Positions 2,092 through 12,735 of a stretch of 12,735 nucleotides of DNA are shown one piece after another. The DNA is taken from sequence record OQ473814.1. The stretch is one strand, 5' to 3'. The notes beneath the pieces are model-generated. The model ran no database searches. It had not been told where the DNA came from and saw only the letters and a list, made by a program, of their open reading frames with translations. How positions within the stretch are numbered: position 1 is the first letter of the stretch; the number at the start of each line of letters is the position of its first letter. The translations under genes and the position numbers were made by a program.

Positions 2092-2316
2092 ATGCAATTG
2101 CCCGAACAAGTTAAGGTCCACGCGTTCATGGATGATGACACGGAGATTACCATGGTAGTGGAAAGGTCCGATCTCCTAGAGTACGTGGAAGGGTTACGCG
2201 AGTTCTTAGTGGGGAAGGGATACAAGACTTCCACGTTTAAGGCAATCTCTAGGACCCATACCGTCTATATGACTTGGGACGCGGAGGGGTCTAACAGTGA
2301 GGATAGAGACGCTTAA
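2092..2316 (+). CDS. Hypothetical protein, 74 aa
   Basis: ATG 11 nt after the previous stop; fits the operon tiling. Confidence 0.8.
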   Translation: MQLPEQVKVHAFMDDDTEITMVVERSDLLEYVEGLREFLVGKGYKTSTFKAISRTHTVYMTWDAEGSNSEDRDA

Positions 2317-2479
2317 GGGGATAGTTAAGGAAGGTACCCGCGTTAAGGTAACTACGAACAACCACAGTTACGAGGGTACCATCTCCTACATGGATGACGC
2401 GGTTATCGTGAATACGGCGGACGGCAAAGTAGTCATAGTAGCCTCGGCGGTTAAGGAATTGACGGTATTGGGGGAGTAA
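2297..2479 (+). CDS. Sm/LSm/Hfq-like small beta-barrel protein, 60 aa
   Basis: GTG start with GGAGGGGT SD at 2283-2290; helix then [23 protein letters not shown]...[14 protein letters not shown] follows the Sm1/Sm2 pattern. CDS is likely; the fold is moderately supported. Confidence 0.7.
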   Translation: [60 protein letters not shown]

Positions 2480-2480
2480 C

Positions 2481-2657
2481 ATGACCCTTATCGTAATCAC
2501 GTTTAAGATAGACCGCGATACTCTAGACGTTTTGGACTCAGTGGCGGGGTCCCTCAAAATGAACAGGTCCGAGTTCATTAGGAGGGCGATAAGCCACGAG
2601 ATAGCGAGTTACGTGAATAAGGACGCAAAGGCTAGAGTTGAGAGGGTTAAGCTATGA
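2481..2657 (+). CDS. Ribbon-helix-helix (CopG/Arc/MetJ-like) DNA-binding protein, 58 aa; not in the ORF track
   Basis: MTLIVITFKIDRDTLDVLDSVAGSLKMNRSEFIRRAISHEIASYVNKDAKARVERVKL: ITFKID strand, helix, NRSEFIRRAI helix; GGGGAG SD; fills the gap exactly with an ATGA overlap at 2654-2657. Confidence 0.92.
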   Translation: MTLIVITFKIDRDTLDVLDSVAGSLKMNRSEFIRRAISHEIASYVNKDAKARVERVKL

Positions 2658-3364: not shown

Positions 3365-3949
3365 ATGCCTAGGCTCACGAGTTTGGGCTTTAGGATAACT
3401 ACGCGGAGATGGACCATAGAGGACCTTAGCAAGATTGAGCAGTGTATGGGTGTGATTGAGAATTCCACGGAATTCCAAAGGTGCCTAGGTAGGAGGAGGA
3501 CGGACGTATTGGCGATCCGCAGGTATATCCTAGCTGTCCGTAACAAGGAAGCCCCGGCTATTCTCGTGGTACCGCCCGTTATTTCGGTGGAAGGGGTTCA
3601 ATCCGAACAGGGGGAGGAGGGGGGAGAAACGTGCAGTTCGATCGATGAGGGTGAACCCCTATGTGTATACGGGTGGTTTAACCCGGATTGCGTAGCGGAG
3701 GCAGTTACGGGTGCGTCTATGGACTACGCTACTGAACAAGCGGGGGATGAGGGTAGGATCAGGGTCAAATACGGGACGGGCGTAGAAGAACGCCCTTGTG
3801 ATAACCCGCAAATAGGTCCTATCGTAGATATCGAGTACCACGGGACTACAGTGTGCAGTGGCGAGGGATCCCTAGAGGAGTTAATGGAAGAGGCGTTACA
3901 ACACATAGATGAATACTTTGCGGAGATGGGGGAGGACTTCAATGAGTAG
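3365..3949 (+). CDS. Hypothetical protein, 194 aa: basic N-terminal Myb/SANT-like HTH candidate and acidic Cys-containing C-domain
   Basis: RRWTIEDLSKI...LGRRRTDVLAIRRYIL resembles the WT.E...LG.R...R Myb-type pattern; overlaps the next gene by 8 nt. Confidence 0.8.
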   Translation: MPRLTSLGFRITTRRWTIEDLSKIEQCMGVIENSTEFQRCLGRRRTDVLAIRRYILAVRNKEAPAILVVPPVISVEGVQSEQGEEGGETCSSIDEGEPLCVYGWFNPDCVAEAVTGASMDYATEQAGDEGRIRVKYGTGVEERPCDNPQIGPIVDIEYHGTTVCSGEGSLEELMEEALQHIDEYFAEMGEDFNE

Positions 3950-4313
3950 TTGGAGGGTACCCATAGACCCGGTTCACCCCTACGTAACGCTAGACTGGGA
4001 CGTGCGTTATGACACGCGACACTCTACCCTTAAGTGGCGGTCCATGGTAGCGTTTTTGACGGGGGCGGGGATTCACGAGGTCATGACAAGGCACAGTGCG
4101 GGCGGAAACACTCACGTGATCATTAAGTGGACCTACGACCTCACGTTTTGGGAGAGGCTAGTTATACGTTCAATTCTACAGGATGATCCCTACCGTATTA
4201 GTGCCGATATTAGACGTTACTACCGCGGTCTACCGGTTGAACGTTTATTCGGGATTAAGGCGACCCCGGGCGTTTTACGTAAAGCCGGACCGTGGACAAG
4301 AGAAACTTTTTAG
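3942..4313 (+). CDS. Minimal archaeo-eukaryotic primase (AEP)-like protein, 123 aa
   Basis: Start moved to ATG 3942 (GGAGGA SD at 3931-3936). Motif I VTLDWD (D18, D20), motif II RHSAGGNTHVII (S52, H58) and a motif III candidate QDDPYR (D81/D82) occur in AEP order. Confidence 0.7.
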   Translation: MSSWRVPIDPVHPYVTLDWDVRYDTRHSTLKWRSMVAFLTGAGIHEVMTRHSAGGNTHVIIKWTYDLTFWERLVIRSILQDDPYRISADIRRYYRGLPVERLFGIKATPGVLRKAGPWTRETF

Positions 4314-4335: not shown

Positions 4336-4773
4336 ATGAGCGAACCAAATTCTCAAGGGCAAACGGAGGGGTCTAACCCCGCGGAAAAGCCTAAATCTAC
4401 CCCGCCTTCTAAGGTGGAATGTAGAATTTGCGGTAAGAAAGTGAACCCCGCGGGTCTACCACGCCACGAGTGGAGTCATATACCCGACATATACGACAAA
4501 ATGAAAGAGTTAGAGAACAAAATCGCGGAGTTAAAGGCAGTTCAAACTCAACCCGCCCCGGCAGTACCCTCAACTAGTACTCAACCTAACCCCGGGGCCG
4601 CCCCGGCGACCGTGAAAGTTAAGGACGTTAAGCCGTTATTGGACACCGTGCTAGAGCATGTAAAGAGTTGTCCGGAGTGCCGTAGGGAGTTAGGGGAGTG
4701 GCTAACTCAGAATACGAAACAATTCGCTGAGTGGTTCGTACCGGAGGACCAAAGAAAGAGGCTTAGGCTATGA
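4336..4773 (+). CDS. Zinc-finger protein, 145 aa: C2H2 finger, coiled coil, Pro-rich linker, HxxxCxxC motif
   Basis: C29-x2-C32-x11-H44-x3-H48; heptad DKMKELENKIAELKA; H108-x3-C112-x2-C115. Confidence 0.88.
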   Translation: MSEPNSQGQTEGSNPAEKPKSTPPSKVECRICGKKVNPAGLPRHEWSHIPDIYDKMKELENKIAELKAVQTQPAPAVPSTSTQPNPGAAPATVKVKDVKPLLDTVLEHVKSCPECRRELGEWLTQNTKQFAEWFVPEDQRKRLRL

Positions 4774-6492: not shown

Positions 6493-6909
6493 ATGCCCAA
6501 AACCTATTACAGGACGTACCAGATTCAATTTAACGTAGGAGCTTCCCTACCCGCGAATTCCATAATCGCCGGGACTTTCGTAAATCTCGCGAACGGTAAG
6601 ACTGAGTCACAACTACAGGCTCCGTCAAACCAGACGTGGGATATCGTGGACATCTATATCAGGTCTACTAGCGACGATCCCCTAGACGCGACCGTAACAT
6701 TCACTAGGGACGACGTGAATAACCTGATAACGACCGATCCACTCAGTGCCCTAGTGGTAAGCAACCCATCAAGACCTAGGTACCCCGCTATCCGTCTCAA
6801 CCCCGGACAAAGACTTAGTGCGACCGCGACAACCCTCGCGACTAACGGGACCTCCGCCGTAACCGACTACGTGTTTGTAAAGGTGCAGGTAACCGACTAC
6901 TCCGCTTAA
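6493..6909 (+). CDS. Probable major capsid protein, single jelly-roll-like, 138 aa
   Basis: Best SD in the genome and T7 terminator just after; all-beta alternating pattern (TYQIQF, WDIVDIYI, ATVTFT, IRLNPGQRLSAT, YVFVKVQV); no TM helix. Confidence 0.7.
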   Translation: MPKTYYRTYQIQFNVGASLPANSIIAGTFVNLANGKTESQLQAPSNQTWDIVDIYIRSTSDDPLDATVTFTRDDVNNLITTDPLSALVVSNPSRPRYPAIRLNPGQRLSATATTLATNGTSAVTDYVFVKVQVTDYSA

Positions 6910-8533: not shown

Positions 8534-9571
8534 ATGTTACGACCTACGATTGTAAAGGAAAGGGGTGTAATCTCTAGATATATCACGTCAATAGAGCCGG
8601 TTCTAACTACGTGGATGCATGACGCCGGTAGGGATGAACTCCCTAGCCTTATGAGATTAGCGGGTCTAGGTAGAAGACACGGTAAACTGTGGAGAGCTAG
8701 CCTACAGGGTAACGTAGGTCCCTTTACTAGGGACATAGAGATGCTTATCTTCCCGCCATTCTTGTTATCCACGGGACCTAGCGGACCCGTAACCGTGACC
8801 TATCCCCTTAACGGATCCTCGCCTATCTCCGCCACGACTTTCCTCCTAGATATTATCGCGGGCGGTGGTGCCGGTGGCGGGGGCGGTGGCGGTGGATCCT
8901 CCGCCCCCGGACAAGGTGGCGGTGGTGGTGCCGACGGCGGTAGGCTAGTGGTTAAGTTCAGTGGCGGTGCGATCGACACAGGTACAGTAACGGTACCCGG
9001 ACCTAGTGCCGGTGGTGCCGGTGGTTCAGGTGGTGCAGGATCTAACGGACAAAACGGCGGAAACACTACCGTTTCCTTAAACTCCGCGACCGCGACACTA
9101 CAGTCTCAGGGACTCCCCGCGTTTACCATGCCCGCCCCTGTAGGCGGACAATACGCCGGTGGGCAGGGTGGTGCGGGCGGTAACGCCGTACTACAATACG
9201 ATAAGAGCATCTCTCCCTCATTCTTCCTAGAGCTAGGCGGACTTAATCAAGGGGCTTACGCAAATAACTCGCAGATACTTAGCGACTCAGTAGGTACAGG
9301 GGGTTACGGAGTAAACTCGGAGTATCTCAACTTCTCAGGTAGAGGTCTATGGACTAGATCAACCGCGGGTGTAAGCGGTGGTGCAAATACGGGTTCAGGT
9401 ACCGCAGGTTCAGGTGGTGCTAACGCCTACGTAAACGTGCCCTCCGGGTCTATCTACGGTAGAGGTGCCGGTGCGGGCGGTGGCGGTGGCGGTTCAGGTA
9501 GCACGCCCGGGGCAGGTGGTCCCGGTGGACAAGGCGGTCCCGGACTTGTAATAATGCTAGTGGTGGCGTAA
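8534..9571 (+). CDS. Glycine-rich (polyglycine II bundle type) adhesin/spike candidate, 345 aa (alternative start ATG 8741, 276 aa)
   Basis: LLDIIAGGGAGGGG...GGGGADGG...GQNGGNTTV...GAGGPGGQGGPGLVIMLV matches the layout of Gly-rich domains of phage tail adhesins and ALK/LTK. Confidence 0.85.
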   Translation: MLRPTIVKERGVISRYITSIEPVLTTWMHDAGRDELPSLMRLAGLGRRHGKLWRASLQGNVGPFTRDIEMLIFPPFLLSTGPSGPVTVTYPLNGSSPISATTFLLDIIAGGGAGGGGGGGGSSAPGQGGGGGADGGRLVVKFSGGAIDTGTVTVPGPSAGGAGGSGGAGSNGQNGGNTTVSLNSATATLQSQGLPAFTMPAPVGGQYAGGQGGAGGNAVLQYDKSISPSFFLELGGLNQGAYANNSQILSDSVGTGGYGVNSEYLNFSGRGLWTRSTAGVSGGANTGSGTAGSGGANAYVNVPSGSIYGRGAGAGGGGGGSGSTPGAGGPGGQGGPGLVIMLVVA

Positions 9572-9572
9572 C

Positions 9573-11180
9573 ATGATACTAGTAACGTCAGGTGCAGGAG
9601 GTGGTTCAGGACCCACGACATCAACGACTCAGCAATCCGTACAGGTAATCAATAACTCAGATTATTACGTGCAGGTTGCGGTACAGGGACAGAACGCTCA
9701 ACTCAGTAGTTACGTGAATCTAGCCCCTAACGAAAGTAAGTTCATAAACTACGAGGGTACAGCGACCGGGCTCAGTGTAATCTACTTTACGGACTCCTCC
9801 TACTCCGTAAGTATCTATTCAACGACCCTTCCAATAGGTCCCTCCGTTATAGTACCTAACCCGCCCTCTCAGTATACCACGCCAAAGACTACGACCACTA
9901 GCTCTACGTCTAGCTCAAGTTCAGGATCCACTGGGACTAGCTCAACGTCTACGGGGACTAGTTCGGGGAGTTCGGGATCTACAGGGTCTACAGGATCCAC
10001 GGGGTCTAGCGGTTTTCAGCTCTGTTATCCTTCCTATATTACGCAGTATCAGAACTTCCCTACGGACTTCCTACCGGCTAACTGTAACGCCGGACAACTC
10101 AAGGCTTATGGTAATTTCAGTGTTCAATTCTTCTACGAGAACGGTAATCCCTACAACCTAGGAGTGTCTCAAGTTGAGGTTACGGTCTATCAGGGCTCTA
10201 CTATCGTGGACCAAGGTACCCTCCCCGTAACTCAGGGTGGTAGCGTAGTTCAGGGATGGTTCATATTCTTCTACGACCTACCTGACACTAAGGTCCACAT
10301 TAAGGTCCCTGTCCCTCAAGGTTATACAATACAAGGATTTACGCCACAGAACGGTTACGTGGACTACGTACTAGATTACGGTTACGCAGGGAGTGAGGGG
10401 ACTGAGGCTTACCTAGTGCAGATAACCCCTCAACCTACTCAACCACAAGGTACTCCGGTACAGGTTACGCTCATAAACGACCTAGGATGTACAGTTACGG
10501 TTACGTGGTCCGGCGGTTCAGTTACACTACAGGCAGGTCAATCCCAACAAGTTACGGTGCCGAGTTACCCGGACGCAGGGACGGAGTTCAACGTGTACCT
10601 ACCGGGTGCGACTAGCGGGTGCGGATCGAGTTTTGGACCAATTACCGCGAACCAAACTATCTATCTCAGTTACCTAGGGTGTAGTGTATGTCCCTCAACG
10701 ACCCCGCCAACGGGTGGACAAGGTGCTACGACTACCACGGGGACTACGACCACGACCTCTACCACTACCCCGCCAAGTTCAACCGTAACGACCACGCTAG
10801 TGAACCCGTGTAACGTTAAACTAACGGCGACCTATAACGGGCAGACCTACACGCTTAACCCGGGTTATAATCAACTTAATGGACCTCCGGGGACTATCAC
10901 CGTGTCCTATAACGGTCAGACCATAGGAGTCTATAACGCCGGGGGGATTCAGACAGTATCGTGTCCATCTCCTCCCTCAACTACGACCACTACGACCACT
11001 ACGACCACTACCACGACCGGGACCGGGACAGGGACAAGTACAGGGACAGGGACAGGTACTACTACCCCGCCCTCAACCACTCCGCCCTCAACTCCTATGA
11101 TAGACTACGTGATAATAGGCGGTGCCGTGGTAGGGCTAGGTGCCCTACTGTACTACCTTAACAAGAGGGGACGCAGATGA
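9573..11180 (+). CDS. Large modular tail-anchored spike/surface protein, 535 aa: beta domains joined by Ser/Thr/Gly/Pro stalks, C-terminal TM
   Basis: Beta-rich domains, three low-complexity linkers, 8 Cys, TM IDYVIIGGAVVGLGALLYYL followed by NKRGRR. Confidence 0.9.
   Translation: MILVTSGAGGGSGPTTSTTQQSVQVINNSDYYVQVAVQGQNAQLSSYVNLAPNESKFINYEGTATGLSVIYFTDSSYSVSIYSTTLPIGPSVIVPNPPSQYTTPKTTTTSSTSSSSSGSTGTSSTSTGTSSGSSGSTGSTGSTGSSGFQLCYPSYITQYQNFPTDFLPANCNAGQLKAYGNFSVQFFYENGNPYNLGVSQVEVTVYQGSTIVDQGTLPVTQGGSVVQGWFIFFYDLPDTKVHIKVPVPQGYTIQGFTPQNGYVDYVLDYGYAGSEGTEAYLVQITPQPTQPQGTPVQVTLINDLGCTVTVTWSGGSVTLQAGQSQQVTVPSYPDAGTEFNVYLPGATSGCGSSFGPITANQTIYLSYLGCSVCPSTTPPTGGQGATTTTGTTTTTSTTTPPSSTVTTTLVNPCNVKLTATYNGQTYTLNPGYNQLNGPPGTITVSYNGQTIGVYNAGGIQTVSCPSPPSTTTTTTTTTTTTTGTGTGTSTGTGTGTTTPPSTTPPSTPMIDYVIIGGAVVGLGALLYYLNKRGRR
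10980..11054 (+). repeat. Coding tandem repeats (ACTACGACC x3, then GGGACA-type hexamers) encoding the Thr and Thr-Gly stalk
   Basis: ACTACGACC at 10980-11006; GGGACC/GGGACA/AGTACA units at 11019-11054. Confidence 0.85.
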
Positions 11181-12231: not shown

Positions 12232-12572
12232 CCGCGAAACTAGAGGCTTACGTAGACTACCTTGAGGAGATTAAGCCCTACCTCAACGAGAAGGATATAT
12301 CCACGGTTAATATGCTCCTCAACTCCCTCAGGCTCTACCTCCGCTATCCCGACCTAGAGACCGGCATAATGCTACGAACCTCCGCGACCTTAACCTCCGC
12401 TTATGTCCGCATGACTAGGGCTACGGAGATACTCGTGGATATCCGCGACGTATTCTTGAGGGTGCTAGACGAATACGCCCGCGAACTGATCCAAGAGATG
12501 AACGACCGACTCCGGTTAATCCGCCCCTCCCTCTACGTGATCGATCCGCAGACCCTCGCGAAGGTGGAGTGA
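12228..12572 (+). CDS. Helical hypothetical protein, 114 aa; probable paralog of 447-779
   Basis: ATGA overlap; the stop abuts the right ITR; VNMLLNSLRLYLR motif. Confidence 0.85.
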   Translation: MTAKLEAYVDYLEEIKPYLNEKDISTVNMLLNSLRLYLRYPDLETGIMLRTSATLTSAYVRMTRATEILVDIRDVFLRVLDEYARELIQEMNDRLRLIRPSLYVIDPQTLAKVE

Positions 12573-12573
12573 A

Positions 12574-12735
12574 GGCTTCTCTCCTACGCCCTCCTCTCCT
12601 ACGCCCCTCGACCACGCTCCGCTCACGTGGCTCTCCGCGACCGCGGGCGTCCGCCATGCCACGCGCTGCCCTTCGCGACCCTCACGCCTCGCCTCGCCTC
12701 GCGAGACGCCGACGCGAGACGCTGCCGCGAGACGC
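12574..12735 (-). repeat. Right inverted terminal repeat (162 bp)
   Basis: Exact reverse complement of 40-201; carries one perfect 13-bp unit plus the two variant units. Confidence 0.98.

Follow-up and report, generated by a model that had tools for sequence, protein, structure and literature searches.

A conserved family of small proteins from linear-genome archaeal viruses with a predicted active-site layout resembling that of primases

Introduction

Archaeo-eukaryotic primases (AEPs) are built with an N-terminal alpha/beta module ahead of a module that resembles the RNA recognition motif (RRM); their DNA-binding motifs sit in the N-terminal region, and no primase-proficient AEP investigated to date lacks ancillary domains or subunits (PMC10345425). 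Here we describe a protein of 123 amino acids, ORF14, which is encoded by MTIV3 (Metallosphaera turreted icosahedral virus 3) and is AEP-like in its active-site layout, this layout being the best available match. The gene lies in GenBank record OQ473814, whose entire 12,735 bp were analysed and are referred to below as the window. An original prediction, made from the letters of the window alone, had seen in ORF14 a candidate ultra-small, palm-only AEP that could work on the genome ends. Our best reading, which we hold tentatively, sees in ORF14 a nucleotidyl transferase of primase type that consists of the palm only and begins DNA synthesis on behalf of the host replisome.

MTIV3 has as its host Metallosphaera prunae D4-4, which originates from a Tengchong hot spring. 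In GenBank its record carries the label 'partial genome', and every one of the 33 annotated open reading frames (ORFs) is a 'hypothetical protein'. The paper describing the virus assigned a replication function to none of its ORFs (PMC10101205), and a 2026 preprint on MTIV4, which counts 11 core proteins in this virus group, predicts functions there for a repressor and virion proteins only and none for replication. A similar gap exists in HCIV-1, a haloarchaeal sphaerolipovirus that according to its authors has inverted terminal repeats (ITRs) and probable terminal proteins and no ORF for a DNA polymerase (PMC4958249).

Results

The ORF14 gene and its motifs

The coding sequence of ORF14, annotated as hypothetical, runs on the plus strand from 3942 to 4313. 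GenBank places the start 33 nucleotides (nt) further upstream, at an alternative ATG at 3909, which gives 134 amino acids; the 123-residue form is the one present in the protein database, where it matches cluster P0001, and the conserved domain begins only at about residue 12 (nt 3975). Translation recovered the ORF and the three motifs named originally (VTLDWD, HSAGGNTHVII and a segment with two adjacent aspartates) exactly where they had been placed, and the order along the protein is VTLDWD, HSAGGNTHVII, ILQDDPYRISADIRR, RRYYRG and RLFGIK. ORF14 is under purifying selection, with a ratio of non-synonymous to synonymous substitution rates (dN/dS) of 0.12 against a 79%-identical metagenomic relative (Logan contig L005).

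All of these elements are read from the plus strand. VTLDWD, which resembles AEP motif I and holds D18 and D20, occupies 3984–4001 and falls on predicted strand 1 (residues 12–22 in the AlphaFold2 model). The hairpin RHSAGGNTHVII at 4089–4124, which resembles motif II and provides R50, S52, G55 and H58, links predicted strands 2 (residues 46–51) and 3 (residues 56–67); its HSAGGNTHVII part, with S52 and H58, lies at 4092–4124. It is followed by a charged helix–loop–helix, RSILQDDPYRISADIRR at 4167–4217, with R76, D81, D82, R85, D89 and R92 on and between predicted helices 69–78 and 83–94; the part with D81, D82 and D89 is ILQDDPYRISADIRR at 4173–4217, and the candidate third catalytic acid or acids lie within this helix–loop–helix. 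The RLFGIK strand with K106 is at 4242–4259, and a C-terminal beta-hairpin with the signature AGPW (A115, G116 and W118) is at 4284–4295.

A large family under strong constraint

ORF14 belongs to what we call the c109-like family, after c109 of MTIV1, i.e. almost always stand-alone proteins of about 110 amino acids that occur only in archaeal viruses with linear double-stranded DNA genomes. When 1.84 billion cluster representatives were searched with a profile, 273 clusters matched at E ≤ 1e-3, of which 116 reached E ≤ 1e-10, so that the family comprises at least 273 clusters, and nearly all matches are stand-alone proteins of 100–150 amino acids. The c109 proteins of MTIV1 and MTIV2 are direct homologues of ORF14 (35–38% identity, E about 1e-9 in tblastn), and ORF13 of SPV3 was likewise found by tblastn with ORF14; ORF40 is a second SPV3 paralogue (tblastn, hmmsearch). 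More distant virus proteins were placed in the family by profile comparison: ORF144 of AFV1 (hhalign P 1.3e-4, hmmsearch 5e-9), ORF36 of HCIV-1 (186 amino acids; 3782–4342 in L076; hhalign P 2e-7, probability 93.5%) and, with its C-terminal half, a core protein of betalipothrixviruses (AFV3 ORF267a, SIFV0030, AFV9 ORF252; hhalign 98.2%, E 6e-14), a domain present in all 15 of the betalipothrixvirus-type records searched. In the PHROGs collection ORF14 falls into phrog_31183 (E 4e-14, function unassigned), which together with phrog_25650 contains sequence homologues that carry no functional annotation.

Conservation was counted in a MAFFT alignment of 151 representatives, one per 50%-identity cluster. 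Among the acids, D82 is present in all 151 and D89 in 150, with D18 kept in 147, D81 in 146 and D20 in 145. R50, S52 and R76 are each found in 150, H58 in 149 and the hairpin glycine G55 in 123; towards the C-terminus the counts are 150 for R85, 149 for W118, 147 for R92, 145 for K106, 134 for G116 and 121 for A115. The residues singled out by the original prediction have thus proved to be near-invariant residues of a large and strongly constrained family. As far as sequence can tell, conservation of this kind points to an enzyme whose RRM-like sheet bears a site for metal and nucleotide. H58 is followed by Val-Ile in ORF14, and position 60 across the family is Lys, Arg, Leu or Ile, most members having one of the two basic residues. 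Position 104, on the strand adjoining strand 1, is Asp or Glu in 121 of the representatives, non-acidic in the other 30 and Gly in ORF14. Because the two adjacent aspartates are kept family-wide and position 104 is not always acidic, the third catalytic acid, if there is one, should be sought in the D81/D82 pair, which had been proposed from the outset.

In the outlying virus proteins the surviving residues are D18, D20, S52, G55, H58, D81, D82, R85, R92 and K106. R50 and R76 are altered in the proteins of betalipothrixviruses and HCIV-1. D89 gives way in most of the outliers, to Asn in betalipothrixviruses and AFV1 and to Glu in HCIV-1. ORF14 itself matches the family profile over its full length and has the signature residues D18, D20, S52, H58, D81, D82, R85, R92 and K106. 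Pattern scans returned three loci in IMG/VR and 55 metagenome loci, almost all of them MTIV-like, and two such scans found no cellular or proviral copy in 185,579 prokaryotic species genomes (one genome per species).

Some members have an N-terminal extension, which is helix–turn–helix (HTH)-like in P0097 and zinc-ribbon-like in P0148. Others are duplicated. P0009 (163–828 in L072) is a tandem duplicate; the fold signal persists in its second copy (i-E 1e-7), which has lost every invariant polar residue. Such a degenerate copy points to a functional unit of two modules and recalls the AEP core, which likewise has two. P0067 and P0028 are likewise tandem-duplicated, with a second copy devoid of DxD, SxxGxxH and DD, and can be regarded as natural pseudo-dimers. 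The betalipothrixvirus core protein is laid out differently, with a conserved N-terminal part of about 60 amino acids (YIDxKV...IGEEKYGT), for which no relatives were detected in Pfam and PDB-sequence searches, a variable Gly/Arg-rich linker and then the c109-like domain; its gene (in AFV3 ORF267a, 15319–16122 in L077; in SIFV SIFV0030, 301–1098 in L078) is always preceded by a small 'putative regulatory protein' (ORF96).

We found no paper that treats the family, or SIFV0030, ORF267a, AFV1 ORF144 or c109, in functional terms, and uniting the proteins of MTIV, SPV3, AFV1, betalipothrixviruses and alphasphaerolipoviruses with more than 270 metagenomic clusters under one residue signature appears to be new.

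Predicted structure

Confident AlphaFold2 models were obtained for ORF14 (predicted local distance difference test score, pLDDT, 91.2; predicted template modelling score, pTM, 0.81) and for P0006, which is 33% identical and was modelled from a 105-sequence alignment (pLDDT 94.3, pTM 0.86). Both models have the predicted topology beta-alpha-beta-beta-alpha-alpha-beta-hairpin. In the modelled first half, strand 1 with DxD is followed by two helices and the hairpin of strands 2 and 3, where S-x-x-G would form the turn and the histidine would open strand 3; the second half is predicted to consist of a helix, the DD loop, another helix, a short strand with K106 and a final AG-W hairpin. By these models the fold of ORF14 is an RRM/ferredoxin-like 'palm', and the palm-like fold expected earlier, with DxD on strand 1 and SxxGxxH on the next hairpin, is predicted twice over. 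From the way in which conserved hydrophobic residues alternate, D18, D20, R50, H58 and K106 would seem to share one face of the modelled sheet.

Foldseek searches of the PDB gave nothing at E ≤ 1e-3 with either model. In the ranking for the ORF14 model, however weak its scores, places 1–11 are all taken by AEPs (PolDom of Mycobacterium tuberculosis LigD, 2r9l/2iru; CAPP Prim-Pol; Prim-PolC), and domains of HUH Reps and origin-binding proteins come after them; the match to LigD PolDom has a probability of 0.90–0.92 and a query-normalised template modelling score (TM) of 0.42–0.46. With the P0006 model the top probabilities again belong to LigD PolDom (0.82) and the Methanocella polymerase of non-homologous end joining (0.69), in a list where ribosomal protein S6, AcrB subdomains and the origin-binding domains of AAV and RepB are interleaved with AEPs. 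Over both runs the query-normalised TM of AEP matches is 0.40–0.46. Against a viral library the first matches are family members (c109, AFV1 ORF144, an HHIV-2 protein, AFV3 ORF267a and AFV2 ORF116), followed with weak scores by Reps of circular Rep-encoding single-stranded DNA (CRESS) viruses and by phage primase–helicases.

Likeness to Prim-Pol enzymes

AEPs are recognised by three motifs. Motif I (hhhDhD/E) corresponds in ORF14 to V-T-L-D18-W-D20 on predicted strand 1, and motif II (sxH) to N56-T57-H58, which comes after the S52-x-x-G55 turn of the hairpin; in HCIV-1 ORF36 it reads SSSGGGLHLV, which we take to be a typical Prim-Pol spelling. For motif III (hD/E on the strand next to motif I) the corresponding strand position, 103–104, is F-G in ORF14. 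In c109-like proteins 38 residues separate DxD from H58 and 24 more lead to D82, to be compared in pRN1 with 32 residues between D111xE113 and H145 and 26 more to D171 (residue roles partly from PMC2965215). Judged by sequence, motif order and spacing therefore seem to match those of Prim-Pol enzymes.

Profile–profile comparison used a Prim-Pol profile of 73 sequences, i.e. residues 40–255 of pRN1 ORF904 and relatives. With hhalign, H58 of the family was aligned with H145 and, further on, D89 with D171; greedy extension also aligned TLD with ILD of motif I in pRN1. The score of 18.5 exceeds those of all controls (40 column-shuffled profiles, maximum 17.8; the reversed profile, 12.1; four other segments taken from these proteins, maximum 14.1), and the result is collinear and consistent and is not significant evidence of homology. 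The test is a weak one, because searches seeded with pRN1 gave only close relatives of pRN type; comparison with NrS-1 as a single sequence was uninformative. We also considered the N-terminal half of ORF267a as a lost N-terminal module of an AEP and rejected it, since hhalign gave no signal against pRN1 and the Pfam and PDB-sequence searches were empty.

Distribution and the replication gap

The c109-like gene is conserved in MTIV1–3 and is also present in SPV3, AFV1, betalipothrixviruses and HCIV-1. Metagenomic contigs with other members are virus-like and consist of ORFans, with no polymerase, helicase or primase family of Pfam recorded on them; on one such contig of 21.8 kb, Pfam gives confident matches only to an HTH and to the N-terminal domain of archaeal pilins. 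Helicases are annotated in betalipothrixviruses. No polymerase family, and thus no protein-primed family B polymerase, was found among the scanned ORFs of the window or on the related contigs. Since the gene is a core gene of several groups of archaeal viruses with linear genomes, most of them lacking a recognised replication enzyme, its occurrence speaks for a part in copying the genome. Within the window, scans of the ORFs with Pfam and PHROGs matched no family of polymerases, helicases, primases, nucleases or single-stranded DNA-binding proteins (SSBs). ORF14 is thus, as had been claimed, the sole replication-type candidate found there, and the possible SSB invoked alongside it has no counterpart among these ORFs.

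Neighbouring genes

Upstream, ORF13 (3365–3949, plus strand; phrog_31086, function unassigned) overlaps the start of ORF14 at 3942 by 8 nt, just as had been noted. Its earlier description as Myb-like found no support in Pfam, no family being matched at E ≤ 1. BLASTP identified homologues in MTIV1 (a188), MTIV2 (b181), SPV3 (ORF14) and L005; only in the MTIV/SPV3 group are there homologues, and only there does the gene adjoin the c109-like gene. ORF13 is a possible but unproven partner of ORF14. As a universal partner ORF13/a188 had to be discarded, the upstream genes in L064, L065 and AFV1 being unrelated, and so had a programmed frameshift from ORF13 into ORF14 that would produce a full-size AEP: the relation of the two frames differs between MTIV1, MTIV2 and MTIV3, and in L005 a gap of 22 nt lies between the genes.

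Downstream, ORF15 (4336–4773, plus strand) matches PF13913 (zf-C2HC_2; E 6e-5, below the gathering score) and phrog_29202 (E 1e-5). It has a finger of C2H2 or C2HC type near the N-terminus (CRICGKK...HEWSH) and a second CxxC pair near the C-terminus, and it is kept downstream of the c109-like gene in MTIV (phrog_29202). By inference only, it is a possible ancillary DNA- or nucleotide-binding partner.

The other recognisable proteins among the scanned ORFs are a ribbon–helix–helix (RHH) repressor (ORF10), the virion proteins ORF18, ORF19 and ORF21, and the glycine-rich ORF26. ORF21 (6493–6909, plus strand), a homologue of the MTIV structural protein c137, weakly matches PF25646, the family of the SPV1 major capsid protein VP4, at E 0.004, below the gathering score; this may be a sign that MTIV-like viruses are linked to Portogloboviridae through their capsid proteins. 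ORF26 (PF21722, E 4e-5) and ORF27 together occupy 8534–11180 on the plus strand. The 535 amino acids of ORF27 include long Thr/Ser/Gly tracts, which arise from tandem repeats of 6–18 nt, and a C-terminal hydrophobic anchor, and it is plausible that the two are turret or host-recognition proteins.

Genome ends and annotation

The 13-bp terminal array on which the original prediction had built is indeed there. The left ITR (1–201) contains 5.8 units of GCGTCTCGCGGCA at 1–75 and the right ITR (12574–12735) contains 2.8 units at 12700–12735; the repeat is perfect between 40–201 and 12574–12735, i.e. over at least 162 bp, with arrays inside it. The left repeat is presumed to be a replication origin or end. 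The right array also holds a variant unit, CGCGAGACGCCGA. Because it is three units shorter than the left array, the true termini of MTIV3 were probably not reached in this record; ITRs of complete MTIV-like genomes measure 189–366 bp.

Several annotated ORFs deserve comment. ORF1, ORF2 and ORF33 of the GenBank record (1–410 and 12421–12662) lie in or beside the ITR, which has a GC content of 65%, and an identical N-terminal stretch of 31 residues (MAWRTPAVAESHVSGAWSRGVGEEGVGEKP...) is read from both ITR copies (113–259 on the plus strand and 12516–12662 on the minus strand); these three are likely not genes. An unannotated ORF of 60 amino acids with a GTG start at 2297–2479 on the plus strand is identical at 32 of 60 positions to a gene of L005 (1803–1985), and because this opposite-strand ORF is kept in L005, MTIV3_ORF9 (2291–2578, minus strand) is probably spurious. 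In the 18-kb record of SPV3/'STIV3' (OQ473816.1), nt 1–77 recur in inverted form in mid-record, at 9100–9176, and each half has its own c109-like gene (ORF13 and ORF40) and its own genes for structural proteins. Assembly may have fused two related genomes, each of about 9 kb, or the record may contain a large duplication.

Discussion

A tentative role in starting DNA synthesis

If ORF14 is a primase-type nucleotidyl transferase, the DxD, hairpin, DD..R......R and Lys residues would form a two-metal nucleotidyl-transfer site of Prim-Pol type that has shed the N-terminal module for template binding. ORF14 would act as a dimer or together with virus-specific partners and make a short primer at or near the ITRs, which the host replisome would then extend; the same role might be played in lipothrixviruses. 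Priming of this kind would therefore explain how replication starts in MTIV-like viruses and alphasphaerolipoviruses, where no polymerase or primase has been recognised. A more specific version, in which the family is a new half-size branch of primase–polymerases whose homodimers, or pseudo-dimers in the tandem forms, prime de novo at the ITRs, possibly with deoxynucleotides or on the terminal protein of sphaerolipoviruses, and so spare the removal of an RNA primer, strikes us as doubtful. The still wider idea of a telomere-like, protein-only end-replication system, with action on the 13-bp array, extension of the repeats and cooperation with Myb-like and SSB proteins, is pure conjecture.

A number of observations weigh against a primase-type enzyme. 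The N-terminal alpha/beta module of AEPs is missing, since the DxD strand starts at residue 12 in ORF14 and at residue 2 in MTIV1 c109, and in most of the 151 representatives no domain precedes it. Compared with Prim-Pol domains known to be active, the c109-like domain is only about half as large. D81, D82 and D89 are placed in helices or a loop and not on a strand as motif III of AEPs is, and the strand position that topologically matches motif III is a glycine in ORF14. Neither ORF14, nor 150 members, nor the family consensus has a match in Pfam, NCBIfam or PDB-sequence searches, and the comparison with pRN1 Prim-Pol gave P = 0.02 and a probability of 2%. At the level of structure, neither Foldseek run matched AEPs below E 0.12, and scores like those of AEPs also went to generic ferredoxin-like folds (S6, AcrB) and to HUH Rep and origin-binding domains. 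Finally, none of the best 150 matches is fused to a helicase, PriCT or PriL-like domain, the only additions being the HTH-like or zinc-ribbon-like extensions and self-duplication. The AEP link is thus not statistically secured, and we do not file ORF14 as a member of the AEPs, because the N-terminal module is absent, motif III is ambiguous and statistical similarity is lacking. As for the palm-only AEP of the original prediction, the description 'palm-only' is accurate and the predicted RRM-like fold, motifs I and II and the top probability of LigD (0.82–0.92) speak for it, but no sequence or structure score reaches significance.

Other roles in replication or beyond have to be weighed against the same data. 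A Rep-like or origin-binding protein, with the fold that HUH rolling-circle endonucleases have in common with SV40/JCV large T antigen and the DNA-binding domains of papillomavirus E1 and AAV Rep, would recognise the ITRs, perhaps nick or melt them with the help of a metal, and bring in the host replisome but synthesise no primer itself. For ORF14 this seems unlikely to us, even though the gene lies in an early block beside the RHH repressor and the zinc-finger protein and the HTH-like or zinc-ribbon-like extensions of P0097 and P0148 would suit such a function. In Foldseek, pMV158 RepB, JCV large-T, the wheat dwarf virus, PCV2 and smacovirus Reps, AAV2 and E1 have E-values near those of AEPs, and CRESS-virus Reps stand next after the family members in the viral library; the probabilities of these Rep and origin-binding matches, however, are 0.13–0.44, versus 0.8–0.9 for LigD PolDom. 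The four invariant acids and the SxxGxxH hairpin are foreign to known origin-binding domains, and the HUH motif is absent, with His58 as the single conserved histidine. Nor is any Tyr conserved in the 151-member alignment: the highest Tyr column reaches 66, and the commonest ones downstream of the hairpin (positions 93, 94 and 84) about 40 each. Covalent nicking chemistry of the HUH type is therefore excluded, and an HUH nickase, which would need a second His as well as a conserved Tyr, was rejected.

A small, dimeric, metal-dependent nuclease or phosphodiesterase, similar to Cas2 or VapD, might process genome ends or counteract host defence, e.g. by degrading signalling nucleotides. Cas2 has an Asp near the C-terminal end of strand 1 in a ferredoxin-like domain, and the c109-like domain of about 110 amino acids has a conserved Asp towards the same end of its strand 1; one member gives a weak match to Cas3_I-F_Cas2 (E 0.054), and the tandem duplicate suggests dimerization. 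Moreover, the viral ring nuclease AcrIII-1 is spread across unrelated families of archaeal viruses, a distribution that the c109-like family resembles. We nevertheless consider this explanation decidedly improbable: Cas2 and VapD are not in the top 50 Foldseek matches of either model, Pfam shows no match to Cas2, VapD or DUF1874, and in the genomes of MTIV-like viruses and betalipothrixviruses the gene is part of the syntenic core rather than a variable terminal accessory gene, while the SxxGxxH hairpin with R50 and K106 resembles a site for nucleotide triphosphates. Three other catalytic identities were considered and rejected. A PD-(D/E)xK nuclease via D104-x-K106 fails at position 104 (Gly in ORF14, non-acidic in 30 of 151), and a serine-recombinase-like arrangement (R-x-S ... 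D-x-x-R) fails because R50-x-S52 lies in the beta-hairpin of an antiparallel RRM-like sheet. Against a GGDEF domain, a cyclase or a polymerase palm of the classical kind stands the strand 2–3 hairpin, which lacks any acid and so is of the AEP type and not the classical one. Least probable, in our estimate, is a non-catalytic adaptor in which the invariant Arg and Asp residues build a structural lattice of salt bridges and offer a surface on which a host factor for replication or transcription docks. The alternation of R76, D81, D82, R85, D89 and R92 on two helices could form an intramolecular salt-bridge network, such networks are common in thermophile proteins, and ORF14 is very small, with no enzymatic homologue detected. 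Yet the invariance of these Arg and Asp residues extends beyond thermophilic members to halophilic ones (HCIV-1), the combination of DxD, His and Lys on one face of the sheet looks catalytic, and the second copy of P0009 loses exactly the invariant residues and still keeps the fold signal, which is what one expects of an active site and not of residues that stabilize the fold.

Implications and comparison with known systems

Whatever its activity, one 'hypothetical' gene is common to MTIV-like viruses, lipothrixviruses, alphasphaerolipoviruses and hundreds of uncultivated archaeal viruses. Should primase activity be real, ORF14 would be the smallest known primase-type enzyme and, once this activity is confirmed, a new minimal variant among primase–polymerases; the RRM palm alone could then carry the chemistry, and there would be one testable handle on the initiation of replication in several families of archaeal viruses. 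If the ORF36 family is primase-type, protein-primed initiation by an enzyme other than family B would become possible in HCIV-1, and if the version with dimers priming de novo at the ITRs were true, several virus families would share one way to start and complete the replication of linear DNA with a host polymerase. As a nuclease or origin binder, it would still represent a new and widespread family of viral enzymes.

Among described systems, Cas2 and VapD are like ORF14 in size, in the ferredoxin-like fold, in the acid or acids of strand 1 and in a likely dimeric unit, but the SxxGxxH hairpin and the DD..R..R helices of ORF14 have no counterpart there. HUH Reps and origin-binding domains, which serve replication initiation in small mobile elements, share with ORF14 the alpha/beta fold class and the placing of conserved residues on strands 1 and 3; in contrast to the HUH pair and Tyr of these Reps, ORF14 has an invariant DxD and DD. 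With AEPs such as pRN1 ORF904, LigD and CAPP, ORF14 has in common the predicted RRM-like palm, the hhhDxD strand followed about 35 residues later by small-x-His on a beta-hairpin and then by acidic and basic residues, and the fact of being encoded by a mobile element that has no replicative polymerase of its own; unlike AEPs, it comes without a helicase, PriCT, PriL or Zn-stem partner domain.

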